Assembly: GCF_046119375.1 (NCBI RefSeq)
Contig: NW_027362764.1
Location: 457,002,001-457,066,000 of the forward strand
Direction: 5' to 3'
DNA length: 64,000 nt
Origin: Phyllobates terribilis
Taxonomy: Eukaryota
Made by a program: the position numbers and the translations under genes. The notes beneath the pieces were generated by a model. The model worked only from the letters and a program-made list of their open reading frames with translations, was not told the origin of the DNA and searched no databases. Each line of letters opens with the position of its first letter. The stretch's first letter is position 1. Below are positions 9,490-44,687 of the stretch, one piece after another.

Positions 9490-12400
9490 ATGAGTGGGAA
9501 AAAGAGAGGTTGTGGTGGAAGGCAGAATAGGCTTGGTGTTCAAGGTATACATGGGGTAGGTGGTAATGTTAGTGAAAGCACTTGTGAACTAACACCGTCA
9601 TGTCCTATCCAAAGGCAACTGGCAACTTCTGTTACTGGACGGGCTACTCCACTTCCTTTCTTTGGCAGCCGCACAGCGATACGCCTTGTTGATAAGGGCC
9701 AGAAGGAGCAGGTGCTCCAGTGGGTGGCAAGCGCTGCTTCAAGTGGCCTCTCCTCTTTTTCCTCCACCTCAACATCACACACAGTACAGTCCACAGAGGT
9801 GGCTCCCCAATTACCCTTACTTCTCCCCGCGTCACAACTGTCCATGTGCCCAACTGACTGTAGCGAACCACAGGTAGGTGAGTCTGTAGAACTGTTCACC
9901 CATTCTATACCATGGGCATCAGAAGTGTACTTCAAATATTCACATAGTCAAGAAGAGGAGGAAAGCATCTGCACCAATGCCCAAAATTTTTTTAGGTTAG
10001 ATTCAGGGCAGGACAGAGTATGGTCCGAGCAGGTTCCTGACCCTCATCACCAGATGTTATCCACTGGGGAGGGAGGTGATCCTGATGACACTCAGATACC
10101 TGAGGCTCATGCGGACTGTACTGTGCTGTCAGAGGAGAAGGGTCACTCTGAGGGCGAGAAATGGAATAACACATTGGATGATGACGAGGTTGAAGATCCT
10201 ACTTGGTTTGAACCCAGAGTCACATAGCTGAGTAGCTCATCTGAGGAGGTGGAGGAGGAAGATGAGGAGGTTACCTTTCGCCCTATGGTGCAGACACGGA
10301 GTGATGCAAGCACGAGGAGCACTGCATCCCTAGCCACAACTGTGGCCAGCAGCGGTCGCGGGTCTGCAGCTCACAGCGGCGGCAAGGATTGCCTTTCCTG
10401 GGACTTTTTTGTCACTGCAAAGGATGAGCCAACTCACATTATCTGCAAACTTTGTGATAAAAAACTCAGTAGAGGGACAAAGTGCAATAATTTGACTACT
10501 ACATGCATGAACGTTCACATGCATAAACATGCATTACACTGGGAATCTCACAGAGCTGAAATGCGGACCTCAACAACCATCAGCTGCCCCATCAACCACA
10601 TCTGCTGCTTCTTCCTTTTCCTCTGTTACCGTGCCAAGCATTGGCATGCTGGTCTCCCACCGCAGAACTTCTGGTTCTCTACCTGCTCCAGTCAGGCTGA
10701 GTGAGAGCCCGTCAGCTGTAACGGAAGCGGACATGCCTGCTGTGTTTGTTTCACTGAGCACACCACATGTTACGGTGGATTGAGAAACATCTGCGCCTGC
10801 ACCTCACTCACGGTCCAGCAGTTTGTCCGTTTCACCGTACTCTGCCCTCTCTCAGCACTGCAGCCAGCCCTCGGGCCTGCAGTTGTGGTCACATAAAAGA
10901 TAGCTTTGTCATGTGTAGGATGAAACAAAGAGGTTGCACTCCATCTCAAATCTGTTGGCCACGGAAATGCTGCCTTTCCGCCTGGTAGATACAGACGGTT
11001 TGCGAAAGCTGATGGCCGTTGCAGTCCCCCAGTACCAGTTGCCAGTCGCCATTACTTCTCTAAGAAAGCTGTGCCTGTGCTCCACCAGCATATCACAGTC
11101 AACATCACCCATTCCTTGACTAAATCTATATCTGCCAGGGTGCATTTCACCACAGACACCTGGACGAGTAAGCTTGTCCAAGGGTGTTACATCTTGCTGA
11201 CTGGGTACTGGGTGACTCTGGTGGCTGTGGGGGTAGGCAGGGAAGGGGCTGCTCCACAAATCTTGGAATTCCCAAGACTTACAGAACAAACCTCTGTATT
11301 TCACATTTCCTCCACTGCCTCTGCCTCCCCCACCTCCTTTAGGGCCTCCACCTGCGCAATCAACCTCTGCCTTAACGAGACACATGTTCCAACGTGCAGA
11401 GCGAATCCACACCACCTCTGTATTGCGCAACCAGGGCTCACCACAATCAGGCACTCTTCAAATTAATACTTGGAGATCTTCGCCACTGTCCCGGCCTGGA
11501 TGAGCTGCTTCAGAAAGTACGGAAGCTGTGTGCTCACTTCCGCCATTCCCAGCCCTCATGTCATCGACTTGCATCGATACAGAGGTCTTTCTCCATGCCA
11601 GTTAACAGGTTGATATGCGATGTGCCGACGCGGTGGAATTCCACTCTGCACATGTTGCAGCGACTGTTGCAGCAGCAACGAGCCCTGACCCAGTATGTCA
11701 TGTTGTATAGCCTGGGACAATGCAGTACAGACGTGGGGCATATCATGTTTACGGATTGGGAACAGATTAAGGAACTTTGCACCCTTCTGCACAGTTTTGA
11801 AATGGCTACTAAACTAGTTAGCGCTGATGATGACGTCATCAGCATCACTATTCCGGTCATCTTCATGCTGGAGAAGACTTTGAATAGCGTGCGGCATGAG
11901 GTGGTTATACCAGAAGAAAAGGAGGATGCGGAGAGGAAAGGGATAAGAATGTCTCAAAGTTCCAAACTGTCTTCACACAGGCGGATGCTAAGTGACGGCG
12001 GCTTCCCTTGATCGAGGGGGTTTGGTGATACCAGACATACTGTTAGTGAAGGTGCAAGAGCCGAGGAACAAATGGAGGAGGAAGAGGTGATGGGCGAGCA
12101 ACAGTCAGAAGATGAAGAGGATAATCATCCCCTCTCTGTTGAACGTGGTTGGCAGGAGGGGACGGAGGAAACAAGCATCAGTGTTACCCAGCCAACAATA
12201 GAGTCTGGCTTTGGATCACCTGGAAGAGCCTGACATATGAGTGCCTTCTTGCTGCACTATCTGCAACATGATCCCCGTATACTTAGGATTCAAAATAATG
12301 CTGATTATTGGATTGCCATTCTATTAGATCCACATTATAAGGTTAAATTTTGCCAGATGCTTCCAGCCCTGGAAAGGGACCCGCTAATGTTGGAGTATCG

Positions 12401-12925
12401 AAACAACCTTTTAAGCAACCTTAATAGAGCTTTTCCCCAAGATAGGAGTGAGGCACACAGTGTGCATTGCAGCTGTAGTCTTTCAACCTCAGGCACGTCA
12501 GTTCATCAATGGCAAAACATTAGCAGCAGCAGAGTAAGTGACTGAAGCAATTTCTGTGAGTCCTTTCACACATTTTTTTACAACAGCTGGTGCACAAGTC
12601 TGACACGTGGTGAACGACTGGAGAGGATGGTGCAGGAGTATCTAGAGCACAATATGAATACCATCAGGGAGGGTTTGGACCCTTTTCATTTCAGTCTTCA
12701 AAAATGGATGAATGGCCTGAGCTCGCCACTCACGTATTGGAGGTTTTATCATGCCCGGAAGCCAGCGTTCTCTCAGAACATGTCCTCTGCGCTGCTGGTT
12801 GTGTCCTGATGGATAAGCGCAACCGGCTGTCCCCTGAAAGTGTAGACCGCCTAACTTTCATCAAGATGAACAAGTCATGGAGCTCAAAGGACTTTTGCAC
12901 CCCAATTGCAGACTCTACAGACTAG
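9490..12925 (+). pseudogene. hAT transposase pseudogene (BED zinc finger, DDE core, hATC dimerisation domain)
   Basis: BED finger WDFF..C..C..H; HFTTDTW (first Asp); CDVPTRWNSTLHMLQRL; LLDPHYK; WPELA..SVLSE..LTFIKMN; multiple frameshifts and stops. Confidence 0.93.
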
Positions 12926-13029
12926 GCAATGTTGTAGTTTTTAGTGTGCTGCATTGATCTTGCGGAATTGCAGTCTGTGACATGGCTTGTGTGCCTGCTC
13001 TTGCTGCTGCTGCAGGTTTTAGGCCCTAA

Positions 13030-13790
13030 TTTTTTGAAATGTGGAGAATACAGATTTGGTCTCTCAATCCATTGAGTTGGCTGTAGTGGAAGAGGTGTCA
13101 TTCCTAATTCTACAATTTCTACCATACTCAAATTGATGCCACTTTGCTGGTGTTAGGCCCTATTTCAGGGAAATGTGAACACTCCAGGTTAGGTCTCCAT
13201 CTCCTGGGTTGGCTGTAGTAGAAGAGGTGTCATTCCTAATTTTGCAATTTCTACTGTACTGAAATTGATGCCACTTTGCTCGTATCTGACAAGAATTTTT
13301 GGAAATGTGGGGAATCCTAATTGGGTCTCCATCTATTGAGTTGGCTGTAGTGGAAGAGGTGTTGTGCCCCATTATACTACTTATAGTTCTGTAAAATTTA
13401 TGCCACTTTGGTGGTTCTAGGCCCAAATGTTATCAAATTGGAACACTCCTGATTGGGTCTCCATCTACTGGATTGGCTGTAGGGGAAGAGGTGTCGTTAC
13501 TAATTCTACAATTTCTACTGTACTGAAATTGATGCCACTTTGTTGGTGTCTGCCACTAAGTTTTGGTAATGTGTGGAATCCTGATTGGGTCTCCATCTTT
13601 TGGGTTGGCTGTAGTGGAAGAGGTGTCGGTCCCCATTATACTATTTCTACTGTAGTGAAATTGGTGCCACTTCGGTGGTGTTAGGCCCTAATTTAGTGAA
13701 AAGTGAACATTCCTGATTGGGTCTCCATGTGCTGGGTTGGCTATTGTGGAAGAGGTTTTGGTCTCCTTTACAATAGTTATACTCTAGTGA
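13030..13790 (+). repeat. ~132-bp 3' subterminal tandem repeats of hAT copy 1 (about 6 units)
   Basis: aaatgtg..ctcctgattgggtctccatct..gggttggctgtagtggaagaggtgt recurs about every 132 bp. Confidence 0.85.
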
Positions 13791-15577
13791 AATTAATTTT
13801 TTTGTGCAGATATTGTTCTCCACGCAGGGGTACACAGATCTGATAAATAGTGATGAGCGAGCATACTCGCAAGTACTCGGCAATCCACCCATGTTTATTG
13901 GCTGAAAAACAGCACTTAAAGTGCTGGGTGGAGAATAGAGCATGGCAGACAAGTACCCGGATACTCGTACGAGTATCTTGTGTACCGTAATGTTCTAACT
14001 AGTGATGAGCGAAAGTGCTCACCACTACTCGGTACTCGTCTGAGCGTCATGGTGTCGACAAGCTCGGTGAATATTTCCGGCTTGCTCGGGCGGGAGCTCG
14101 GGTCCTCACCCTGCATGTTTGTCGCTCTTTAGTGAGCCAATGAACATGCAGGGATTGCTTGTCATGCACTGTAATGCCGTAGCCATGTTGGTTGTGGTAT
14201 TACAGTGATTGGCTGGCCGCATAGCGTCATTGGGTCTATTTAAGACCCGGTGACGCTAGGCTCGTCACAGTCTACCCAGAAGCAGGCAGAGTACGGAGAG
14301 ATGCTGCTGCATGAGGGAGAGATTTGCTTGTTTATTAGTTAGTATAGGTATTCCACAACATATCTATATATCCATCTGAACTAACAGTCCTTCTGAGGAC
14401 TAATCCAGCTGCATATATTCAGTGGTGATAGCAGGAGTTAGGCAGGCAGGGTTTGTGACAGTGTATACAGCAGAAGAGGGTCCATTGCACGTTTTATCTG
14501 CTGCTGTTACAGATATTTGTAGACATAGCTCCAGATATCAGGGGCCAGGGCTAATATTTTTTTATCTTAATCCTGATTATTTGCTTAAAAAGCAATCCAG
14601 AGTACACCATTTTTCTGCTCCATTTGCTTTTTAGCACTGTAGAATACAGCCAGATCTTTTCCATATTACAGTGATAAAAATTCAGAAATTTGTAGTGAAC
14701 GTGGAATATATTGGCCTCCATTTACAGTTTGTAGCAGTGTGTCAGTGAAGCTATTCACATGAGGTCGCTGTGAAGAATAGTAAACTACAGGGCTGCTATT
14801 TAAAACCGTGGGTGTCCATCAGACGTTTAACATAACTGCAGTCCAAATTCAGCTATTTCTGTTGTCCATTTACAGTTTGTAGCAGTGTGTCAGTGAAGCT
14901 GTTCACACTTGGCCGCTGTGAAGAATAGTAAACTACAGGGCCGCTATTTAAAACCATGGGTGTCCGTCAGACGTATCACATATAACTGCGGTCTAAATTC
15001 AGCCATTTCTGTCCTCCATTCACAGTTTGTAGCAGTGTGTCAGTGAAGCTATTCACATGAGGTCACTGCCAAGAATAGTAACCCACAGGGCCGCTATTTA
15101 AAACCATGGGTGTCCGTCAGACGTATCTCATGTAACTGTGGTCCAAATTCAGCCACTTCTGTCGTCCATTTACAGTTTGTAGCAGTGTGTCAGTTAAGCT
15201 ATTCACACGCGGTTGCTGTGAAGAATAGTAAACCACAGGGCCGCTATTTAAAACTGTGGGTGTCCATCAGACGTATCACCACAGGCGGATTATAATGAGG
15301 GCAATCCGGGCGACCGCCCGGGGCCCCGAGCCTCCAGAGGGCCCGCGGCTCCGGGCGGGGTGTCTAATGCCAGATTGCCCTCATTATATGTGCGGGCCGC
15401 CGCGGCACATACCGGTAGCAGTGGCGGGAGGGGGGGCCCCGTACCGCTCCCCCAGCAGCGGGTGCCGCTACTTCTTCATCGGCCAGGCCAGCACTGCAGC
15501 AGTTAACTTCCCTGTGCTGGCCCGGCCGCATCACTGCTAGGAGACACGGCCCTGTGCGCGGCCGTGTCTCCTAGCTG

Positions 15578-16075
15578 ATGGGCAGATGTCATTGTGTGAT
15601 GTCTGTTTGTGTGATGTCTGTGTGTGTGTGTGTGTGTGTGTGTGGGCAGATGTCATTGTGTGATGTCTGTTTGTATGTGTGTGTGTGTGGACAGATGTCA
15701 TTGTGTGATGTCTGTTTGTGTGATGTCTGTTTGTGTGTGTGTGTGTGGGCAGATGTCATTGTGTGATGTCTGTGTGTGTGTGTGGGGGCAGATGTCATTG
15801 TGTGATGTCTGTTTGTATGTGTGTGTGTGGGCAGATGTCATTGTGTGATGTCTGTTTGTGTGTGTGTGTGTGTGGGCAGATGTCATTGTGTGATGTCTGT
15901 TTGTATGTGCGTGTGTATGTGGGCAGATGTCATTGTGTGATGTCTGTTTGTGTGTGTGTGTGGGGGGGCAGATGTCATTGTGTGATGTCTGTATGTGTGT
16001 GGGGGGGGCAGATATCATTATGTGATGTCTGTTTGTGTGTGTGTGGGCAGATATGATTGTGTGATGTCTGTTTAT
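15578..16075. repeat. ~45-bp minisatellite with embedded (GT)n (gggcagatgtcattgtgtgatgtctgtttg...)
   Basis: About 11 visible copies. Confidence 0.92.
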
Positions 16076-16149
16076 ATGTATTTTTGTGTTTCAAATGTGT
16101 TTATGCGTGTATGTATATGTCTGTACATGTTTGTGTGTGTGCGTGACTG

Positions 16150-17505
16150 CGTGCGGCCACCTGCTGAGTATAGTTGGCGCCGTGCGGCCTCCTGCTGTAT
16201 CTGGGGGGGGCGCCGTGCGGCCCCCCACTGTGTATAGATGGCTACGTGCGGACCCCGCTGTGTATAGATGGCTACGTGCGGCCCCCCGCTGTGTATAGAT
16301 GGCTACGTGCGGCCCCCCTCTGTGTATAGATGGCACCGTGCGGCCCCCACCGTGTATTGATGGCGCCGTGCGGCCCCCTGCTGTGTAGAGATGGTGCCGT
16401 GCGGCTCCCCGCTGTGTATAGATGGCTACGTGCGGCCTCCCGCTGAGTATAGATGGCGCTGTGCGGCCTCCTGCTGTCTCTGGGGGGGCGCCGTGCGGCC
16501 TCCCGCTGTGTATAGATGGCTACGTGCGGTCTCCCGCTAAATATAGATGGCGCTGTCCGGCCTCCTGCTGTCTCTGGGGGGGGCGCCATGCGGCCTCCCG
16601 CTGTGTATAGATGGCTACGTGCGGCCTCCCACTTAGTATAGATGGCGCTGTGCGGCCTCCTGCCGTCTCTGGGGGGGCGCCGTGCGGCCCCCCGCTGTGT
16701 ATAGATGGCTACGTGCGGACCCCGCTGTGTATAGATGGCTACGTGCGGCCCCCTGCTGTGTATAGATGGCTACGTGCGGCCCCCCTCTGTGTATAGATGG
16801 CGCCGTGCTGTCCCCCACCGTGTATTGATGGCGCCGTGCGGCCCCCTGCTGTGTAGAGATGGCGCCGTGCGGCTCCCCGCTGTGTATAGATGGCTACGTG
16901 CGGCCTCCCGCTGAGTATAGATGGCGCTGTGCGGCCTCCTGCTGTCTCTGGGGGGGCGCCGTGCGGCCTCCCGCTGTGTATAGATGGCTACGTGCGGCCT
17001 CCCGCTGAGTATAGATGGTGCTGTGCGGCCTCCTGCTGTCTCTAGGGGGGGCCCCATGCGGCCTCCCGCTGTGTATAGATGGCTACGTGCGGCCTCCCGC
17101 TTAGTATAGATGGCGCTGTGCGGCCTCCTGCTGTCTCTGGGGGGGCGCCATGCGGCCTCCCGCTGTGTATAGATGGCTACGTGCGGCCTCCCGCTGAGTA
17201 TAGATGGCGCTGTGCGGCCTCCTCCTGTCTCTGGGGGGGGCGCTGTGCGGCATCTATACTCAGCAGAAGGCCGCACGTAGCCATCTATACACGTATACTC
17301 AGCAGGAGGCCGCACGTAGCCATCTATACGGTGCCATCTATACACAGCGGGAGGCTGCACATAGCCATCTATACACAGCGGGAGGCTGCACGTAGCCATC
17401 TATACACAGTGGGAGGCCGCACGGCGCCATCTATACACAGCGGTAGGCCGCACGGCGCCATCTATACACAGCGGGAGGCCGCACGGCGCCAGCTATACAC
17501 CGCAG
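16150..17505. repeat. 31-bp GC-rich minisatellite with 3-mer higher-order structure; inverted after 17250
   Basis: Unit gtgcggccyccgctgtgtatagatggctac; orientation flips to gtagccatctatacacagcgggaggccgcac from 17251. Confidence 0.92.
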
Positions 17506-17605
17506 GAGTCTCAGTGCTTTGCAAGAACAGTCAATAAATTCTGCTTGACTAATTCTGAGCACCATAAAGTCTGGTTCGCTTCTAACCTGCTGTCTTCATT
17601 TTCAG

Positions 17606-17677
17606 CTTGCTGAATTCTAACTCATTTACTGTCATTCGAGACGATGCCTTTGCTGGTCTCTTTCACCTTGAATACCT
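17606..17677 (+). CDS. LGI2: Internal 72-bp LRR-encoding exon of leucine-rich glioma-inactivated 2 (likely coding exon 3)
   Basis: ttcattttcag|...|gtaagt splice sites; encodes LLNSNSFTVIRDDAFAGLFHLEY. As recalled, human LGI2 has LLNSNSFTIIRDDAFAGLFHLEY and LGI1/3/4 differ at several positions; 72 nt with symmetric phase-2 junctions is typical of LRR exons. Confidence 0.88.
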
Positions 17678-18074
17678 GTAAGTGCTCCACTTAATGTCAT
17701 ATTTTTGATTCTGTTCTTCTTCATCTTTTGGCATGTGCAATTGTATGAGCAAGTATTCATATGAATTTATGACCTACTTAAACCTTCGAGGACCTTAAAT
17801 TTTATTCAATCAAATTTTTTTCCAGTTTAAAACTATGGGACCTATATGTGCCTTGGTCCTCAAAGGGTTTTTAAAGGGGCTGCAAACATAAATACGAAAA
17901 AAATAATTCAATTAGTGCTTTTTGTGTTCATTTAATTTTTATTTGAAGTCCATTTTTTTTATATACCTTGAAATTAAGCCCTACCCCATGGAATGAAGCC
18001 CTACCTACACGACATCTGAGAGCTACATGGATCCCGCTTGTGAGGTGCCTGTCCGTCACTGCTATTCAGTTTTA

Positions 18075-18440
18075 GGGTCCACTCACTAAGCCATATATTC
18101 TCTCATGCAAGAGAATAGGGCCAATTATGCTAATGACACTCGGCTCAAACTCTGTCAGAGCTTCAACTGAGTGTGATCCGATTCTCTCGCAGCACAGATA
18201 TGGAGAAGATGGAGAAGTGTTCATCGGACTGCACTTGGATGACATCCGAGTGCAGTCCAATGTTTTACGTGCACCCATAGACTTGTATGGGTGCACATGG
18301 TCCGAATATCGAATGAGATTATTTTCTCATGCCGATAATCGCAGATCTGCACTGTCCCATAGTATAACATAGGGCCGAGTCCTATCCGATAAAACATCAC
18401 ATAGCATTCGGCCGTGTTATACGACAGTGTGAGCGAGCCC
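18075..18440. mobile_element. PIF/Harbinger-type MITE (366 bp) with TTA TSD
   Basis: tta|gggtccactcac ... gtgagcgagccc|tta. Confidence 0.65.
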
Positions 18441-18689
18441 TTAGAGTCAAGGAATATTTACATGCAGATGATGATATTACTCTCCCAGTGTATATTTTTT
18501 TAGGCGAGTTCATAGTAAATGCTTTGCCTTTTTGACATGTGATCAACTAAAGAACAGGAAAGATTTAGGACCACCCCTATAGAAAAGTGTTGAATATACA
18601 GTCTAATGTGAATTAACAATGAAAAAAAGTTAATTTCACAAATGGCTTGTATTTTTTTTAATACAAACTTTTTTGTGTTTACAGCTCCT

Positions 18690-19093
18690 TTAAAGGGAAT
18701 CTGTCATCAGGTTTTTGCCACCTAATCTGAGAGCAGCATAATGTAGGGTTAGAGGCACTGATTCCAGTAATGTGTCACTTACTGGGCTGCTTAGTGTTGT
18801 TTTGATAAAATCATTGATTTGTCAGAAGGTTATCACTAGATGACTAGTAAGTTCTGTAGGACCCCACCCCCATCACTGATCAGTAGATTTCTGTGTACAC
18901 TGAGCATGGGCAGAAAGCTGTCAATCAGTGGTGTGGGTGGGGCTATACAGAGCGCAGCAGTCAGAGAGCTGCTAGATCTGCAGCAGATAAAACGGTGATT
19001 TTCTCAAAATGACAACAAGCAGCTGAAAAAGTGACACATCGCTGGAATCAGGGTATCTGCCCCTATATTGTGCTGCTCTCAGATGAGGCGGCA
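18690..19093. mobile_element. T2/Kolobok-type MITE, truncated on the right
   Basis: TTAA + agggaatctgtca terminus; related to 38403-38700 and to the right end at 34690-34710. Confidence 0.7.
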
Positions 19094-19827
19094 CAATTAA
19101 TATTGTGCCAAATTAATTTCCCGTGAACTATCACATGATCTATCACAGGGGATCATGTGACATGTCACGTGATAAATCAGGTGTGGGGGGGGGGGCCCGC
19201 GCCTTCTAAACTGCCCGGGGCCCTTGCTACTCTTAATCCACCCCTGCGTATCACATATAACTGCGGTCCAAATTCAGCCATTTCTGTCCTCCATTTACAG
19301 TTTGTAGCAGTGTGTCAGTGAAGCTATTTACTCGTGGTCGCTGTGAAGGATAGTAAACTACAGGGCCACTATTTAAAACCGTGGGTGTCCGTCAGACGTA
19401 TCACATATAACTGTGGTACAAATCCAGCCATTTGTAGTGAACGTGGAAAATATTGTCCTCCAATTACCGTTTGTAGCAGTGTGTCAGTGTACACCATTTT
19501 ACTGCTTCATTTGCCTGTTCGCAGAATACAGACAGATTTTTTTACTTTTATTCACATTACTGTATTGTGGAAGCAGAGGAACTTTTTTCAATGATCAGAC
19601 GCACGTGATCCATATGACTGCCATAATAAAACAGAAATTTTGTGGAGCTTGCCAAATATTCCACTCCATTTAAAGTCAGCCAATTGAACCAATTGACACT
19701 TGGTAGTTGAAAAGTACCATACTATTAGGTGACTGCCTGAAACTGTGGCCATCAGACGTTATCCCAAATGAGTGCCCTAATAATCCAGCAATTTTTGTGA
19801 GCGTGTCAAATATTACACTCCACTTAA

Positions 19828-21015
19828 CCCCTTTCTGGCCTGGGGCGTATTAGTACGCCCCAGGCCATCACCCACGGTTCAGTGAGGGCTCCAGCGGTGA
19901 GCCCGCACTGAACTGAGCACATGTCAGCTGATTATTACAGCTGACATGTGCCCGCAACAGCCGCGGGTGGAATCTCGATCCACCCGCGGCTGTTAACATG
20001 TTAAATGCTGCTGTCAATCAAGCGGTATTTAACAGCCCCGCGCCGGAAGCGCGTCACTTTACCCCGCCCATCGGTGACCCTGATGGGCGGGCATGCAGCA
20101 GACCCCAGTGGTTGTCATGTAAAGATCGCTATGAGCGCCACCTAGTGGTCGGCGCTCATAGCACAGGAGCATTTCTGCTACATAGAGGTGATCTGTTCAT
20201 GTAGCAGAGGCGATCAGACAGTTGCTGCTTCTAGTCTCCCATGGAGACTATAGAAGCATGCAAAAAGTTTAAAAAAAAGGTTTTTAAAAATATTAAAAAA
20301 AATCTAAAAGTTTAAATCACCCCCCTTTTGCCCCATTCAAAATAAAATAATAAAAATAAACCCCACATACACATATTTGGTACCGCCGCATTCAGAATCG
20401 CCCGATCTATCAATATAAACAAATAATTAATCCGATCGGTAAATGGCGTAACGAGAAAAAAATTCCAAATCCCAGAATTACATTGTTTTTCTGGTCACCG
20501 CAACATTGCAATAAAATGCAATAACGGACGATCAAAACATTGTATCTACCCCAAAATGGTATAAATAAAAACTTCTGCCCGGCGCGCAAAAAATAAGCCC
20601 TCACCTGGCTCCAGAAAATGGCACCATTTTTTTTTTTAAAGCAAACTTTGGATTTTTTTTTCACCACTTAAATAAAAAAGAACCTATACATGTTTGCTGT
20701 CTACGAACTCATAATGACATGGAGAATAATAATGGCAGGTCAGTTTTAGCATCCAGTGAACGTGGAAAGAAAAAAAAAAAAAACAACTGTGGAATTGCAT
20801 TTTTTTTGCAATTTCACCGCATTTGGATTTTTTTCCCCATTTTCCAGTACATGATATGGTAAAACTAGTAATGATGTTTAAAAGTACAACTCGTCCCGCA
20901 AAAAAGAAGCCCTCACATGGCCATATTGCCCAAAAAATAAAAACGCTATGGCTCTGGGAACAAGGGGAGCAAAAATGAAAAAGCAAAAATGAAAAATCCC
21001 AAGGTTGTGAAGGTG
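19828..21015. mobile_element. Non-autonomous piggyBac-type element (~1.19 kb)
   Basis: ttaa|cccctttc ... gaaggtg|ttaa; TTAA on both sides; inserted into hAT internal sequence. Confidence 0.75.
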
Positions 21016-21699
21016 TTAAAGTATTGCAGTTGTGTGTTCAAACCTATTCACAGTTGGCCGCTGACAAATAGCATATCTGTGAACAATGTTGTCAGAGTAT
21101 TACGCCACTTTTACAGACTTACAAAAAAAAACTTTAAAAAAAACAAACTAAAATGGAAAAAATGCTAAGAAACATTCTTTTCAGAGTAATGACTTGTATA
21201 TAAGGCCAAAGAATTAAAAAAAAAAAGTTATGGACTGTGGAAGACATTGATGAGACCAGAGTGCTGTAGATGGTGATGATACCACCTAGCAGCACCTGTC
21301 CCTATTGTAAATGCATCTAACAGCGTAATCGATAGGGAATAAAATAGTTTTTAAATTTTTTTGGGCAGCACCTGCAGCACGCAGTTTAAGGCAATAATAC
21401 CTGGCTGGATCGGTATAATATGCTATCCATACTGTGATACCTCACCTGTAAACGAATTTCAGATAAGACAGTTAATAGTCTGGAATATAGAATCTATTTG
21501 AATTGTCCTTCTCATTATTAAGGAGTGTGTCTCCTATACTCTTAATTGCATATGCAACAATTTCAAAGGCTGCCAAAAATTAGGACACACTCTAATATAC
21601 ATTAGAACAGACGTAAAAAAACAAATAAATAAAAACACAGTAGGATCTTTCTTTAGTATAAAAAATAGACTTACCAATGTAACCTCAATGTAATCACAT

Positions 21700-30519: not shown

Positions 30520-33491
30520 TTCACTATCATTAGGAATGGCCAGGTGATGCAAATTTCCCAGCTTTATAAAAACCCAGCCTCCTCTAACCTTGTGCCAAAA
30601 AACAGCAGCCATGGGTTCTTCTAAGCAGCTGCCTAGAACTCTGAAAATGAAAATTGTGGAGGCCCACAAACTAAGAGAAGGCTATAAAAAGATAGCAAAG
30701 CGTTTTCAAGTTGCCCTTTCCTCAGTTTGAAAAATAAATAAGAAATGGCAGTTACCAGGAACAGTGGAGGTCAAGATAATGTCTGGAAGACCAAGCAAAA
30801 TTTCAATGAGAGATGCTCATAGGATTGATAGAGAGTCAAATCAGAACCCTCGCTTGACTGCAAAAGGCCTTCAGAAAGATTTAGCAGACTCTGGAGTTGT
30901 AGTACATTATTTTACTCTTCAGAGACACCTGTACAAATATGACCTTCATGGAAGAGTCATCAGAAGAAAACCTCTCCTGTGTCCTCACCATGAAATTCAG
31001 AATCAGAAGTTTGCAAAAGAACATCTAAACAAACCTGGTGCATTTTGGAAACAAGTCATGTGGATAGATAAGGTTAAAATAGAACTCTTTGGCCACAATG
31101 ATCAAAGGTATGTGTGGAGAACAAAGGGCACAGAATTTCAGGAAAAGAACATCTTGCCAACCATTAAGCATGGGGGTGGATCAATCATGCTTTGGGGTTG
31201 AGTTGTAGCCAATGGCACGGGGAACATTTCATGGATAGAGGGAAGAATGGATCCAATGAAATTTCAACAAATTCTTGATGCAAACATAACACCATCTGTA
31301 AAAAAGCAGAAGTTAAAAAAAGGGTGGCTTCTGCAAATTGAAAATAATCCTAAACACATGTCAAAATCCACAATTGACTTCCTCAAAAGGCTCAGGCTGA
31401 AGGTTTTACCTCACAGTCCTCTGAGCTCAACATCATTGAAAATCTGTGGCTAGACCTCAAAATAGTAGTGCATGAAAGACAAACCAGGAATCTCACAGAA
31501 CTAAAAGAATTTTCCAAGGAAGAATGGATGAAAATCTCTCAAACAAGAATTGAAAGACTCTTGGCTGGCTACAAAAAGCGTTTACAAGCTGTGATACTTT
31601 CAAAAGGGAGTGCTACTAGGTACTAACCATGCAGGGTGCCCAAACTTTAGCATCAGCCTATTTTCCTATTTGTAATTTTTCAAATGTAAAAGATGAAAAT
31701 AGATATACACTACAGACCAAAAGTTTAGACACACCTTCTCATTTAAAGATTTTTCTGTATTTTCATGACTATGAAAATTGTACATTCACACTGAAGGCAT
31801 CAAAACTATTAATTAACACATGTGGAATTATATACTTAACAAAAAAGTGTGAAAGAACTGAAAATATGTATTATATTCTAGGTTTTTCAAAGTAGCCACC
31901 TTTTGCTTTGATGACTGCTTTGCACACTCTTGGCATTCTCTTGATGAGCTTCAAGAGGTAGTCACCGGAAATGGTCTTCCAACAATCTTGAAGGAGTTCC
32001 CAGAGATGCTTAGCACTTGTTGGCCCTTTTGCCTTCACTCTGCGGTCCAGCTCACCCCAAACCATCTCGATTGGGTTCACGTCTGGTGACTGTGGAGGCC
32101 AGGTCATTTGGCGTAGCACCCCATCACTCTCCTTCTTGATTGGTTAAATAGCCCTTACACAGCCTGGAGGTGTGTTTGGGGTCATTGTCCTGTTGAAAAA
32201 TTAATGATGGTCCAACTAAACGCAAACCGGATGGAATAGCATGCCGCTGCAAGATGCTGTGGTAGCCATGCTGGTTCAGTATGCCTTCAATTTTGAATAA
32301 ATCCCCAACAGTGTCACCAGCAAAGCACCCCCACACCATCACACCTCCTCCTCCATGCTTCACGGTGGGAACCAGGCATGGAGAGTCCATCCGTTCACCT
32401 TTTCTGCGTCGCACAAAGACACGGTGGTTGGAACCAAAGATCTCAAATTTGGACTCATCAGACCAAAGCACAGATTTCCACTGGTCTAATGTCCATTCCT
32501 TGTGTTCTTTAGCACAAACAAGTCTCTTCTGCTTGTTGCCTGTCCTTAGCAGTAGTTTCCGAACAGCTATTTTACCATGAAGGCCTGCTGCACAAAGTCT
32601 CCTCTTAACAGTTGTTGTAGAGATGTGTCTGCTGCTAGAACTCTGTGTGGCATTGACCTGGTCTCTAATCTGAGCTGCTGTTAACCTGCGATTTCTCAGG
32701 CTGGTGACTCGGATAAACTTATCCTCAGAAGCAGAGGTGACTCTTGGTCTTCCATTCCTGGGGCGGTCCTCAAGTGAGCCAGTTTCTTTGTAGCGCTTGA
32801 TGGTTTTTGCAATTGCACTTGGGGACACTTTCAAAGTTTTCCCAATTTTTCGGACTGACTGACCTTCATTTCTTAAAGTAATGATGGCCACTTGTTTTTC
32901 TTTACTTAGCTGATTTTTTTCTTGCCATAATACAAATTCTAATGGTCTATTCAGTAGGACTATCAGCTGTGTATCCACCTGACTTCTGCACAACACAATT
33001 GATGGTCCCAACCCCATTTATAAGGCAAGAAATCCCACTTATTAAACCTGACAGGGCACACCTGTGAAGTGAAAACCATTTCCGGTGACTACCTCTTGAA
33101 GCTCATCAAGAGAATGCCAAGAATGTGCAAAGCAGTCATCAAAGGAAAAGGTGGCTACTTTGAAGAACCTAGAATATAAAACTTATTTTCAGTTGTTTCA
33201 CACTCTTTTGTTAAGTATATAATTCCACATGTGTTAATTCATAGTTTTGATGCCTTCAGTGTGAATGTACAAGTTCTAAAGTCATGAAAATACAGAAAAA
33301 TCTTTAAATGAGAAGGTGTGTCCAAACTTTTGGTCTGTACTGTATATATTTATATTTTTTGCCTAAAATACCAAGGAAATGTGTCATCTTTAACTTTAGC
33401 CCTTTTAGAGATCATTTCATATTCAACTTGCTTAACTGTTCACAATAACAGTAATTTTGACCAAGGGTGCCCAAGTTTTTACATGCCATTG
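30520..33491 (+). mobile_element. Tc1 element A: degraded transposase 30611-31626; 3' IR split by Tc1 element B
   Basis: MGSSKQL..GRP..KHGGGSIMLWG..NPKH; right TIR gggtgcccaagtttttacatgccattg|ta at 33491. Confidence 0.85.
31708..33342 (-). mobile_element. Full-length Tc1 element B (1,635 bp; long IRs; DD34E transposase with 2 frameshifts)
   Basis: ta|cactacagaccaaaagttt ... aaacttttggtctgtactg|ta; WSDESKFE, QDNDPKH and SPDVNPIE motifs; probable true ATG at 32928. Confidence 0.93.
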
Positions 33492-38402: not shown

Positions 38403-39260
38403 TTAAAAGGAATTTGTCACTAGGTCTTTGCTACCCCATCTGAGAGCAGTATGGAGTAGAGACAAAAACCCTGAGTACAGGAAAGTATCAATTACTTTGC
38501 TGGTTACTGCAGTTTTGATTAAAGACTGTTTCATCTGCTGTAGATCTAGCAGTTCTCTAAATGCTGAGCTCAATCCCATCAGTAAATGTCGGATTTCTGT
38601 GTACACTGTGCTTAAGGAGAAAGCTATCAATGGATGATAGAGGTGGAGTTATAGAGATCTCATGAATACAGAGGACTGCATGGCAGCAGATTTAATTGTA
38701 TCCTAGTGATAAATGGCGTAATGAAAAAAGTAAAAAAAAAATGTCACAACTACTTTTTTTTGGCTACCACAACATTGCAATAGAATGCAATAACAGGCAA
38801 TCAAAACATCGTTTCTACCCCAAAATGGAATCATTAAAAACATCAGCCTAGGCTGCAAAAAATATGTCGTCACACAGCTCCATATCCTGAAAAATGAAAA
38901 TGCTACAACAATAAAAGCAAAAAAATGCTTTAATACAATGTTTTGTATCTTCATACTTGAACTGAACTCGAGAATCATATTGCCAGGTCAATTTTACCAT
39001 ATAGTGAACATGGTAAATAAAAAAAAACAATTGTGGATTTGCCTTTTTTTTTTTGCTTTTTCATCCCACTTTTTTTTGTTCTTTGTTATACTATATGGTA
39101 AAATTAATTGTGTCATTCAAAAGCACAACTAGCCTCGCAAAAAATAATCTCTCATACAGCTATATTGAAGGAAAAATTAAAAGAGTTATAGTTCTTGGAA
39201 GAAGGGTAGAAAAATGAAAATGGAAAAAAATGGAAAATGGTCCAGGGATGAAGGGGTTAA
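38403..39260. mobile_element. T2-type MITE left part fused to the right end of a piggyBac-type element
   Basis: ttaa|aaggaatttgtcac at 38403; gaagggg|ttaa at 39260; similar to the right half of 19828-21015. Confidence 0.6.
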
Positions 39261-41857: not shown

Positions 41858-44137
41858 TTAGGGAGGGACAACAGCCTGAATGACTTTCCTTCCAAATGCT
41901 AAGTCTCTATTAGATGTTACATCTAGTCTATAATGTTTAGCAAAGGTATGGACAGACAACCATGTAGCTGCCCTGCAAATCTGCTCGATGGATGCACTAG
42001 CTTTTTCCGCCCAGGAGACAGACATACTGTAGCTCTAGTAGAATGAGCTTTCAAGGATTCCGGAGGAGGCAAATCTTGAACCATGTATGCTTCACAAATT
42101 GCTTTCTTAATCCAATTTGCTAGCGTATTTTTTGCAATTTTCTTTCCTTTATTTGGGCCTCCATATTGGACAAATAAACCTGGAGGAAGGATCAGAACCT
42201 CAGTCTCCCTCAAATAGCGGATTATAGTCCTTCTTACATCCAACGTGTGGAATACTTCTTCCTTGCTATTTGATGGATTTTGACAGAATGACGGAAGAAT
42301 TATGGGCTGAGATATATGAAAATTAGACAACACTTTGGGTAGAAAAGAAGGATCCAACTGGAGGATGATCCTGTCCTCCACAATACGACAATAAGGCTCT
42401 CTGATAGACAGGGCTTGGATTTCACTCACTCTTCTGGCTGTAGCCAGAGCTATAAGCAATGCTGCTTTCCAAGACAATTTGTCTATGTGTGCCTCCGCTA
42501 TTGGCTCGAAAGTATGCATAGTTAGGCCTCTAAGAACTACGTTAAGATCCCAAGGTGGAACTATTTTAGCTCTTGTTGGATTAAAGAAGCAGCTATCATG
42601 AACCTCTTAATCCATCTGTTTTGGGCCAAATCAGCATCAAAATAGGAACTTAAAGCCGAGACTTGGACCTTCAGTGTGTTTGGTCTTAATCCTTTAGACA
42701 GACCGTCCTGTAGGAAATCCAATATTCTGGCCACGTCAGGCCGAAAAGGATCTAATTGATGAGGCTCATACCACAGCTTGAAAGCTTTCCAGATTTTTCC
42801 ATAGATGGAATTCGTGACCGGTTTTCTGCTTTTCTGCAGTGTATGGATCACCTGTACTGAGAAGCCTCTGGCTTTTAAGAGGGCGGTCTCAGAAGCCAAG
42901 CTGCTAGAGACAAATTCTGAGGGGCCGGATGGAAAATCGGGCCCTGATGCTGTAGATCGCGGATTCGAGGAAGCATCAATGAATCCTCCATTCTTAGACT
43001 GCTTAATGTTCTGAACCATGCTCTTTTTGGCCACATTGGACCTATTAGGATAGTTTTGACCCCTTCTGACCTGATTTTTTGTAAAGTCCTTGGTATTAAC
43101 GGAATCGGGGGAAAAGCATAAGCGAGCCCGACTTTCCAAGGGTGAGCGAATGCATCTATCCCTGTTGCTGAATCCTCGTGGTCCAAAGAGAAAAAGGCTC
43201 TTACTTTTGCGTTCTTCTGGTTCGCAAACAGGTCCACATCTGGGTATCCCCACTTTTGAACAATCATCTGAAATATCTTCGAGTTCAGACTCCACTCCCC
43301 TGGATGAATGTCTTTTCTGCTCAGAAGATCTGCATGATAGTTGTCGGAGCCCCTCAGGTGCAGAGCCGATAAGGACAGTTGATGCTGCTCTGCCCAGTGG
43401 AAGATTCTTTCTGAAATCATCTGTAACCTCCTGTTTCTTATACTTCCCTGATGTCTCAAATGGGCTACAGTTGTCATATTGTCCGAGTAGACTCTGACAT
43501 GCGACCCCTGAAGCAGAGAATTGGCTGCCCTTAGGGTTTCTTCCACCGCTTTCAGTTCTCTTAAGTTCGAGGACTGCTCTGCTATTTCTTGCGACCAGAC
43601 CCCTTGGAAGGCCTCGTGGGAGACTACTGCTCCCCATCCCCTTTTGCTTGCGTCTGTTTTGACAGATAACAAGGGAAGTTGAATCCAAGCTGAACCTTTC
43701 TCCAGATTTCCTGGATAGAGCCACCAATTTAAAGATACTTTCACCTTCTCTGGCAGATGAATTCTGTTGGAGAGGGAACTTGGAGATCTGTCTCAACAGG
43801 AAAGGATGTAGTTTTGAAGGACCCTTGAATGTGCCTGAGCCCAAGGTACCGCCTGAATAGATGAGGTCATGGACCTGAGGACGGACATGGCGAATGTTAA
43901 TGACACTCCGCTGCGGGTCTTTAGTGCATAGACTTTCGACCTCAACTGAATCTGCTTCTCTTTTGGCAAAAAAGAGGCTTGTTGCTGAGAATCCAGGAGA
44001 ATTCCCAAGAAGGTCTTCCTGGTGGAGGAAATCAGATCTGACTTTTTGTAGTTTATCAACCATCCCAAAGATTCCAGGATCTGGAGGGTCATCTGAAGGT
44101 CTCTTTCCAAACTTGAAACCGAGGGAGCCATCACCAA
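41858..44137 (-). pseudogene. DIRS tyrosine recombinase (ORF3), frameshifted, overlapping pol
   Basis: ILDFLQDGL..NTLKVQVSALS; ARRVSE (Arg); KAHSTR (HxxR); ATW..HY (catalytic Tyr) in a shifted frame near 41930. Confidence 0.9.
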
Positions 44138-44687
44138 AAAAATTGTCTAAATATGGGATGATGCAGATATTCTGTTTCTTTAGATAAGCTACTACCTCTG
44201 CCATGATCTTTGTAAATAGGCGGGGTGCTGACGAAATGCCGAAGGTGAGTACATTGAATTGAAAGTGAAGTAGCTCTCGGTTCTGAGTTACAGCAAATAT
44301 GAGAAATTTTCTATAATCCGGATGAATTGGCACGTGGTAGTAAGCCTCTTGCAGGTCTACTGTTGCCATGACAAATCCTTTCCCAATCAATGGAATCGTG
44401 GACTTTATCGACTCCATCTTGAACCTTCTGTATTTCACATATTGGTTGAGATGTTTCAGATTGAGGATTATCCTGTAAGAACCTGAAACCTTCCTTAGCA
44501 GAAACACCCGAGAATAGTGTCCCTCTCCTTGTTCCCTGCGAGGCACTGGTGAAATGACTCCAGAGTTTTGAAGCTTCTGAAGACCTAACATTAGGAGCCT
44601 GTGTAATCTTGTTGATGGTAAAGATGTTACCTCTATCACTCTTGGAGGGTAGGTGGTAAAGTCTATTTCTGCTCCTACCGTCACCAT
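42875..44687 (-). pseudogene. DIRS pol: reverse transcriptase, RNase H and methylase-like domain
   Basis: DLQEAYYHVPI, FG..SAPR, YLDN (YxDD mutated), frameshift in the T7 run near 44140, stop at 43793; TDAS..GWGA/ELKA/SDN (RNase H); DLFA..YAFPP. Confidence 0.92.

Follow-up and report, generated by a model that had tools for sequence, protein, structure and literature searches.

A complete copy of LGI2 exon 3 within a hAT-style insertion of a frog genome: a probable Pack-type element

How a complete coding exon of the host gene LGI2 comes to lie between the inverted ends of a hAT-like transposon is the question raised by a 64,000-nucleotide stretch of frog DNA, called here, at its full length, the window. 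The exon (17606-17677) sits within a 3,967-bp block (15280-19246) that splits a 150-bp tandem array, and the initial annotation had offered two explanations, namely that a composite or Pack-type hAT element brought in an orphan copy of the exon, or that the functional exon was moved locally inside a transposon. Our analyses favor the first of these: the block is probably a non-autonomous Pack-type hAT element with captured LGI2 cargo, the exon being an orphan extra copy, whereas the second is disfavored because it requires more events.

A single hAT-style insertion in a tandem array

The array itself gives the first line of evidence. Divided into 150-nt units, it has one unit closing with cgtatcac at 15279 and the next in-register unit beginning at 19255, and the register is exact on both sides of the block. 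A perfect (8/8) cgtatcac flanks the block at 15272-15279 and 19247-19254; because the second copy consists of eight bases beyond the array period, the pair is a genuine target-site duplication (TSD) and does not reflect array periodicity. The usual target-site preference of hAT elements is nTnnnnAn, which cgtatcac fits at position 7 only. Taking short terminal inverted repeats (TIRs) of CAG(G/A)G type as the reference for hAT ends, the left end of the insert reads CACAGGCGGATTA and the right end, reverse-complemented, CAGGGGTGGATTA, the two being identical at 10 of 13 positions. TIR matches of this grade occur at eight sites per strand in the 64 kb (about 1e-4 per position), and the position of the insert ends is set independently of the TIR match, by the break in the array. 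Past the first 13 nt, the likeness of the two ends is weak (40-mer alignment, p ~0.03). As a control, about 1.4e8 position pairs were searched for the combination of a perfect 8-bp TSD and a TIR of at least 10/14, which gave three hits, all of them A/T-rich chance matches. Given the in-phase array, the true TSD, the independently placed TIRs, and this chance control, the block 15280-19246 is one hAT-style insertion with short hAT-like inverted ends. The perfect duplication, the exact in-phase split, and the pair of inverted ends at 15280 and 19246 described in the initial annotation were all borne out, as was its remark that neither end has a partner TIR of its own, since none was found inside the unit at up to three mismatches in 13.

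Further copies of either element end were not found in the window (up to three mismatches in 30; self-BLAST), both ends were without a match in two metagenome scans, and an Rfam scan of the whole window gave no match. None of the six open reading frames (ORFs) of the insert scanned against Pfam carries a transposase domain, and every ORF of at least 70 amino acids in the insert lies within repeats or MITEs (miniature inverted-repeat transposable elements). The insert having no transposase of its own, the enzyme would have to come in trans. The parts of the insertion outside the cargo are as follows, rows without a strand being unstranded (TRF, Tandem Repeats Finder):

14715..15279: tandem array of 150-bp units into which the insertion went, left part (TRF: period 150, 3.8 copies, 88%; units in register)
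15272..15279: left target-site duplication, cgtatcac (sequence and array register)
15280..15292, plus strand: left terminal inverted repeat, CACAGGCGGATTA (10/13 against the reverse complement of 19234-19246)
15280..15592, plus strand: left subterminal region, rich in G+C and including a short local hairpin at about 15290-15391 (sequence reading; its ORF has no Pfam domain)
15593..16079: TG-rich 39-45-bp tandem repeat within the element (TRF)
16150..17251, plus strand: G+C-rich 31/94/468-bp satellite, forward (TRF)
17255..17508, minus strand: the same 31/94/468-bp satellite, inverted as a fold-back and ending abruptly at the LGI2 junction (TRF; arms 16752-16930 and 17328-17506, 85%)
19098..19233, plus strand: right subterminal region, containing short palindromes (ATCACATGAT / TCACGTGA motifs; sequence reading)
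19234..19246, minus strand: right terminal inverted repeat, the reverse complement of CAGGGGTGGATTA (10/13 against the left end)
19247..19254: right target-site duplication, cgtatcac (sequence and array register)
19255..19440: continuation of the 150-bp array, in register (150-nt unit cutting)

The satellite at 16150-17508 is built of nested periods of 31, 94, and 468 nt, and its orientation flips at 17251/17255. Pfam SH3_CYT4 hits in ORFs encoded by it were rejected as repeat artefacts.

The LGI2 cargo

Comparisons were made with the LGI2 loci of Eleutherodactylus coqui (L004), Nanorana parkeri (L005), and Engystomops pustulosus (L006). A pyrimidine tract and AG lead into the exon at 17606-17677, and GTAAGT follows it. 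The exon is symmetric (72 nt, both introns in phase 2), and its peptide is identical over 24/24 amino acids to residues 96-119 of Bombina LGI2 (tblastn), in agreement with the intact splice sites and reading frame reported at the outset. At the nucleotide level, it is identical to the exon of E. coqui at 71/72 positions, of Nanorana at 70/72, and of Engystomops at 71/72. When a 31-amino-acid query was run with HMMER against 1.84 billion representatives, LGI2 proteins from frogs and others matched at 92-96% over the aligned part, identities that count up to two intron-encoded residues of the query, and the best relatives of the exon peptide in the PDB are LGI1. Exon-only matches at 87% in Logan contigs (L001-L003), from distant species, were set aside as uninformative.

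Homology to LGI2 continues into both introns. Positions 17509-17755 match the E. coqui locus at 95%, that of Nanorana at 92%, and that of Engystomops at 93% (193-247 nt aligned), and intron-3 homology can be traced as far as 18075, the proven LGI2 stretch being 17509-18075, colinear with the frogs. From left to right, the cargo holds 97 nt from the end of intron 2, cassette exon 3 in full, and 400 nt or more of intron 3. Of the roughly 1.6 kb of host-like sequence first delimited at 17501-19089, LGI2 homology accounts for 17509-18075, whereas 18075-18440 and about 18690-19097 turned out to be MITEs. The cargo and what lies between it and the right subterminal region can be listed as follows:

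17509..17605, plus strand: last 97 nt of LGI2 intron 2, clipped within a frog-conserved block (92-95% to E. coqui, Engystomops, and Nanorana LGI2)
17606..17677, plus strand: copy of LGI2 exon 3, 72 nt, phase 2-2, encoding one 24-amino-acid leucine-rich repeat (LRR), a cassette exon in frogs (protein, nucleotide, and isoform comparison)
17678..18074, plus strand: opening ~400 nt of LGI2 intron 3 (matches colinear with intron 3 of E. coqui as far as 18075)
18075..18440: nested MITE, its termini of GGGTCCACTCAC type (9/12), with duplications of TTA at 18072-74 and 18441-43 (sequence reading)
18441..18689, plus strand: spacer, possibly further LGI2 intron 3 (no detectable match to the three frogs; neutral intron divergence would mask one)
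18690..19097: second nested MITE, boundaries +/- 30 nt (arms 18713-18823 and 18986-19096; a relative at 38403-38691, 67-72%)

At the position of the MITE at 18075-18440, the E. coqui alignment shows an uninterrupted site.

Frogs use LGI2 exon 3 as a cassette exon, since isoform X2 of Phyllobates terribilis LGI2 lacks exactly these 24 residues and X2 isoforms of 515-516 amino acids are on record for about ten further frogs; for Dendrobates tinctorius LGI2, no isoform X2 is on record. The unusually conserved intron flanks agree with this status. Between hyloid and ranoid frogs, a block around exon 3, reaching from -188 to -290 through +95 to +246, is 79-95% identical and is a likely splicing-control element. 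LGI2 intron 2 also harbors a conserved non-coding block of about 550 nt, at 75% between E. coqui and Engystomops and weaker, at 67%, in Nanorana. From the frog-to-frog alignments, the two blocks are placed as follows:

Exon-3 conserved block: window 17509-17755; E. coqui locus (L004) 20767-21303; Engystomops locus (L006) 13655-14158; Nanorana locus (L005) 16867-17244
Intron-2 conserved block: E. coqui locus 16396-16941; Engystomops locus 9638-10172; Nanorana locus 11828-12035

In all three frogs, homology to the window sets in at 17509/17510, which is the base after the inverted satellite ends and lies 97 nt upstream of the exon. At this left junction there is neither a TIR nor a duplication, and a satellite unit is cut in mid-repeat. 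The stretch from -98 to -290 and the ~550-nt block of intron 2 have no match in the 64-kb window (positive control, E=4e-90). The initial annotation had proposed that the remaining LGI2 exons be mapped relative to the window, and none was detected within the 64 kb (tblastn), exons 2 and 4 being absent from the 17.6 kb upstream and the 46.3 kb downstream; its description of this exon as the only host exon present holds to this extent, having been tested for LGI2 alone. In the three frogs, intron 2 measures 6-9 kb and intron 3 measures 4-13 kb, and in a genome bloated with transposable elements (TEs) the distance to exons 2 and 4 is not decisive by itself. Taken together, what surrounds a functional LGI2 exon 3 at its native locus (a flank reaching to about -190 to -290, the intron-2 block, and exons 2 and 4) is missing from the window, and the LGI2-derived DNA in the insert is a clipped fragment, isolated from the rest of LGI2.

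Another copy of the exon in Phyllobates terribilis

A copy of this exon away from its parent gene is found elsewhere. In P. terribilis, LGI2 (XP_073502785.1, P0086) contains exon 3 and is a 57.4-kb gene on a chromosome of 1,240,528,919 bp. A second protein of this species, XP_073504165.1 (P0034), a 212-amino-acid 'uncharacterized protein' in RefSeq, contains the identical 24 amino acids with the same exon borders between unrelated exons and is made up of a TE-like N-terminal part, the exact copy of LGI2 exon 3, and a 27-amino-acid tail. Its gene lies antisense to a P450 gene on a chromosome of 417,890,895 bp, which is not the chromosome of LGI2. A dendrobatid thus carries at least one orphan copy of the exon, and a gene model makes use of its splice sites. 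Among proteins of 117-371 amino acids, XP_073504165.1 was the sole chimeric gene model with the exon.

Origin of the element and alternative explanations

The clipped and isolated cargo, the missing neighbors, the junction formed by a fold-back and not by a TIR, and the extra copy in P. terribilis favor the orphan-copy branch, and we regard it as probable that 15280-19246 is a Pack-type hAT element whose exon is an additional copy. As in the Pack-TIR class, non-TE host sequence of a known parent gene, LGI2, lies between the two ends and a transposase domain is lacking. The LGI2 fragment may have been gained by template switching during break repair or replication within the element, that is, by gap-filling or by a FoSTeS-type process (fork stalling with a switch of template). 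We infer this from the left junction, which is not a TIR or TSD and sits where the satellite has just flipped its orientation. The junction is what is expected of a template-switch product, not of an insertion into an intron, and the fold-back satellite right beside it suggests serial template switches. Capture could have taken place either before transposition to this site, by the FoSTeST route, in which forks stall, templates are switched, and transposition follows, or in place after insertion, by the gap-filling route, and one copy cannot separate capture-first from capture-in-place. The two MITEs might have landed in the cargo afterwards or have come along with the copied cargo. Because the exon is symmetric, has intact AG and GT, and is accompanied by about 175 nt of frog-conserved intron flanks, it could be spliced into local transcripts.

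Several points weigh against a Pack-type origin. The status of the exon as an extra copy was reached indirectly. The ends are just 10/13 alike, and no second copy within the window ties both to one family. The cargo carries three lineage-specific substitutions in 241 aligned sites, as against two for the true E. coqui locus and nine for that of Engystomops; such low divergence is as in a constrained true exon, and the cargo is either very young or constrained. LGI2 of Anomaloglossus spans 97.5 kb, and one true exon per 64-kb window is conceivable in a TE-bloated genome. Moreover, the window is not the locus of XP_073504165.1, which was ruled out because the other exons of that gene are absent from it (tblastn; exact 6-mers in six frames); a scan for the P450 heme motif, run for the same comparison, was empty, which is weak evidence.

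One alternative is a macrotransposition, in which a transposase acted jointly on two one-ended hAT remnants to either side of the real exon 3 and the only exon 3 made a short hop into a neighboring transposon of the same huge intron, LGI2 still splicing it. Such a relocation would agree with the intact splice sites, with the very low divergence of the exon and its flanks, and with the lack of an internal partner TIR for either end; hAT elements such as Ac/Ds are known in general to favor linked targets, and a relative's gene of at least 97.5 kb makes single-exon windows possible. On the other hand, it requires two insertions, two deletions (of the inner TIRs and of the conserved -98 to -290 block), and a correctly oriented two-element transposition. 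It is also at odds with the absence from the 64 kb of exons 2 and 4, of the -98 to -290 block, and of the conserved block of intron 2, and with P. terribilis, in which LGI2 is still compact (57 kb) and includes an exon 3, an extra copy lying elsewhere. The inner ends that a macrotransposon would have beside the host DNA were sought inside the unit at up to three mismatches in 13 and not found, and the left host junction adjoins a satellite cut in the middle of a unit. Relocation is in our view unlikely, and it is quite improbable that the exon in the window is the sole exon 3 of this frog's LGI2, moved by a two-ended hAT event and still spliced from inside the element.

A further possibility is that the block is not one unit, two unrelated hAT-like insertions having occurred at cgtatcac in separate array units, with a later rearrangement that imported foreign DNA between them. 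The motif is present in most array units (14972-79, 15272-79, 19397-404) and could be a preferred target, and the ends, alike at just 10/13 positions, are dissimilar further in. However, a single insertion should leave exactly one 8-bp duplication and an unshifted array register, which is the pattern seen here. Recombination of two inserts would produce a hybrid element without importing an LGI2 fragment, and remnants of inner ends are absent; we consider two insertions improbable. An assembly artefact, in which a chimeric join placed an LGI2 read segment between repeats, is most improbable, for although satellites and a fold-back crowd the region and make assembly hard, a mis-join would not be followed by an array in phase, nor would it come with matching inverted termini and a perfect 8-bp duplication; the window is also free of N runs.

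Relation to known systems

In plants, the shuffling of exons by DNA transposons has ample documentation, and in animals it has been catalogued; to our knowledge, few clean vertebrate examples involve a coding exon that is whole, symmetric, and splice-competent. In 100 animal genomes, 370 Pack-TIRs were described, 25 of them in Xenopus tropicalis, including the multicopy Pack-hAT-N8_XT; the median cargo of the class is 224 nt, 13.4% of animal Pack-TIRs have exonic cargo, many are transcribed as chimeras, and their origin was attributed to template switching, by gap-filling or FoSTeST (Tan et al. 2021, Nat Commun 12:4280, PMC8277862). Like Pack-hAT-N8_XT, the element in the window is, on our reading, a non-autonomous frog hAT bounded by inverted ends and a target duplication, and it encloses a small piece of non-TE sequence from a host gene. 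Unlike it, the element holds about 1.9 kb of satellites with a fold-back at the capture junction, and its TIRs are poorer (10/13). It differs from the animal Pack-TIR class in its cargo, which contains an internal coding exon in full, together with its two splice sites and conserved flanks, and which measures 567 nt or more as compared with the median of 224 nt. It is a clean further case of this published class and not a new kind of system.

The resemblance extends to plant Pack-MULEs (rice) and Pack-CACTA elements, in which a cut-and-paste transposon has likewise caught a gene fragment between its ends and which may give rise to exon shuffling and chimeric transcripts. The plant elements differ in being of Mutator or CACTA type with 9-bp or 3-bp duplications, often with several fragments per element, whereas the element in the window is a hAT with an 8-bp duplication. 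In maize, Ac/Ds macrotransposition shows that hAT ends from different elements can pair and move the host DNA between them. That process starts with two complete or fractured elements around host DNA, whereas here no inner ends or donor-site duplications were seen in the window and the host piece is clipped at a satellite.

An LRR cassette exon with conserved flanks, which presumably act in splicing control, would be a ready-made module for any phase-2 intron into which it landed, and the RefSeq model XP_073504165.1 of P. terribilis already splices a copy of the exon into an unrelated transcript. Orphan exon copies can also mislead the annotation of giant amphibian genomes, for example through inflated introns and split LGI2 models. 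If the relocation scenario were true, a working vertebrate exon would be housed in a potentially mobile unit.

Other repeats and elements in the window

Upstream of the 150-bp array lies the decayed C-terminal part (dimerization domain) of a hAT transposase, followed by a 132/264-bp tandem array at 13011-13756:

~12674..12868, plus strand: remnant of a hAT transposase dimerization domain, upstream of the array (PF05699, E=3.3e-7, 30.5 bits against a cut-off of 21.4)

The initial annotation had assigned the 150-bp array to another hAT element. The domain remnant speaks for such an element nearby, and the decayed hAT at 12674-13756 may also own the array, although this ownership is inferred; the scan of about 1.4e8 position pairs gave no convincing TIR and TSD pair for the termini of the element bearing it. 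The sequence before the array (14600-14715) recurs after it (19428-19545), which makes the array part of a larger degenerate higher-order repeat.

Two further ORFs with mobile-element domains were noted. An intact ORF of 707 amino acids at 42561-44687 (minus strand) contains a reverse-transcriptase domain, with no database protein at E<=1e-100 among the 8000 best word-sharing candidates. Exact look-ups of a 391- and a 296-amino-acid ORF of the window gave no match. The latter, at 32124-33017 (minus strand), carries Tc1/mariner-type helix-turn-helix domains (HTH_Tnp_Tc3_2 and HTH_32) and is the N-terminal half of a transposase or a truncated copy.

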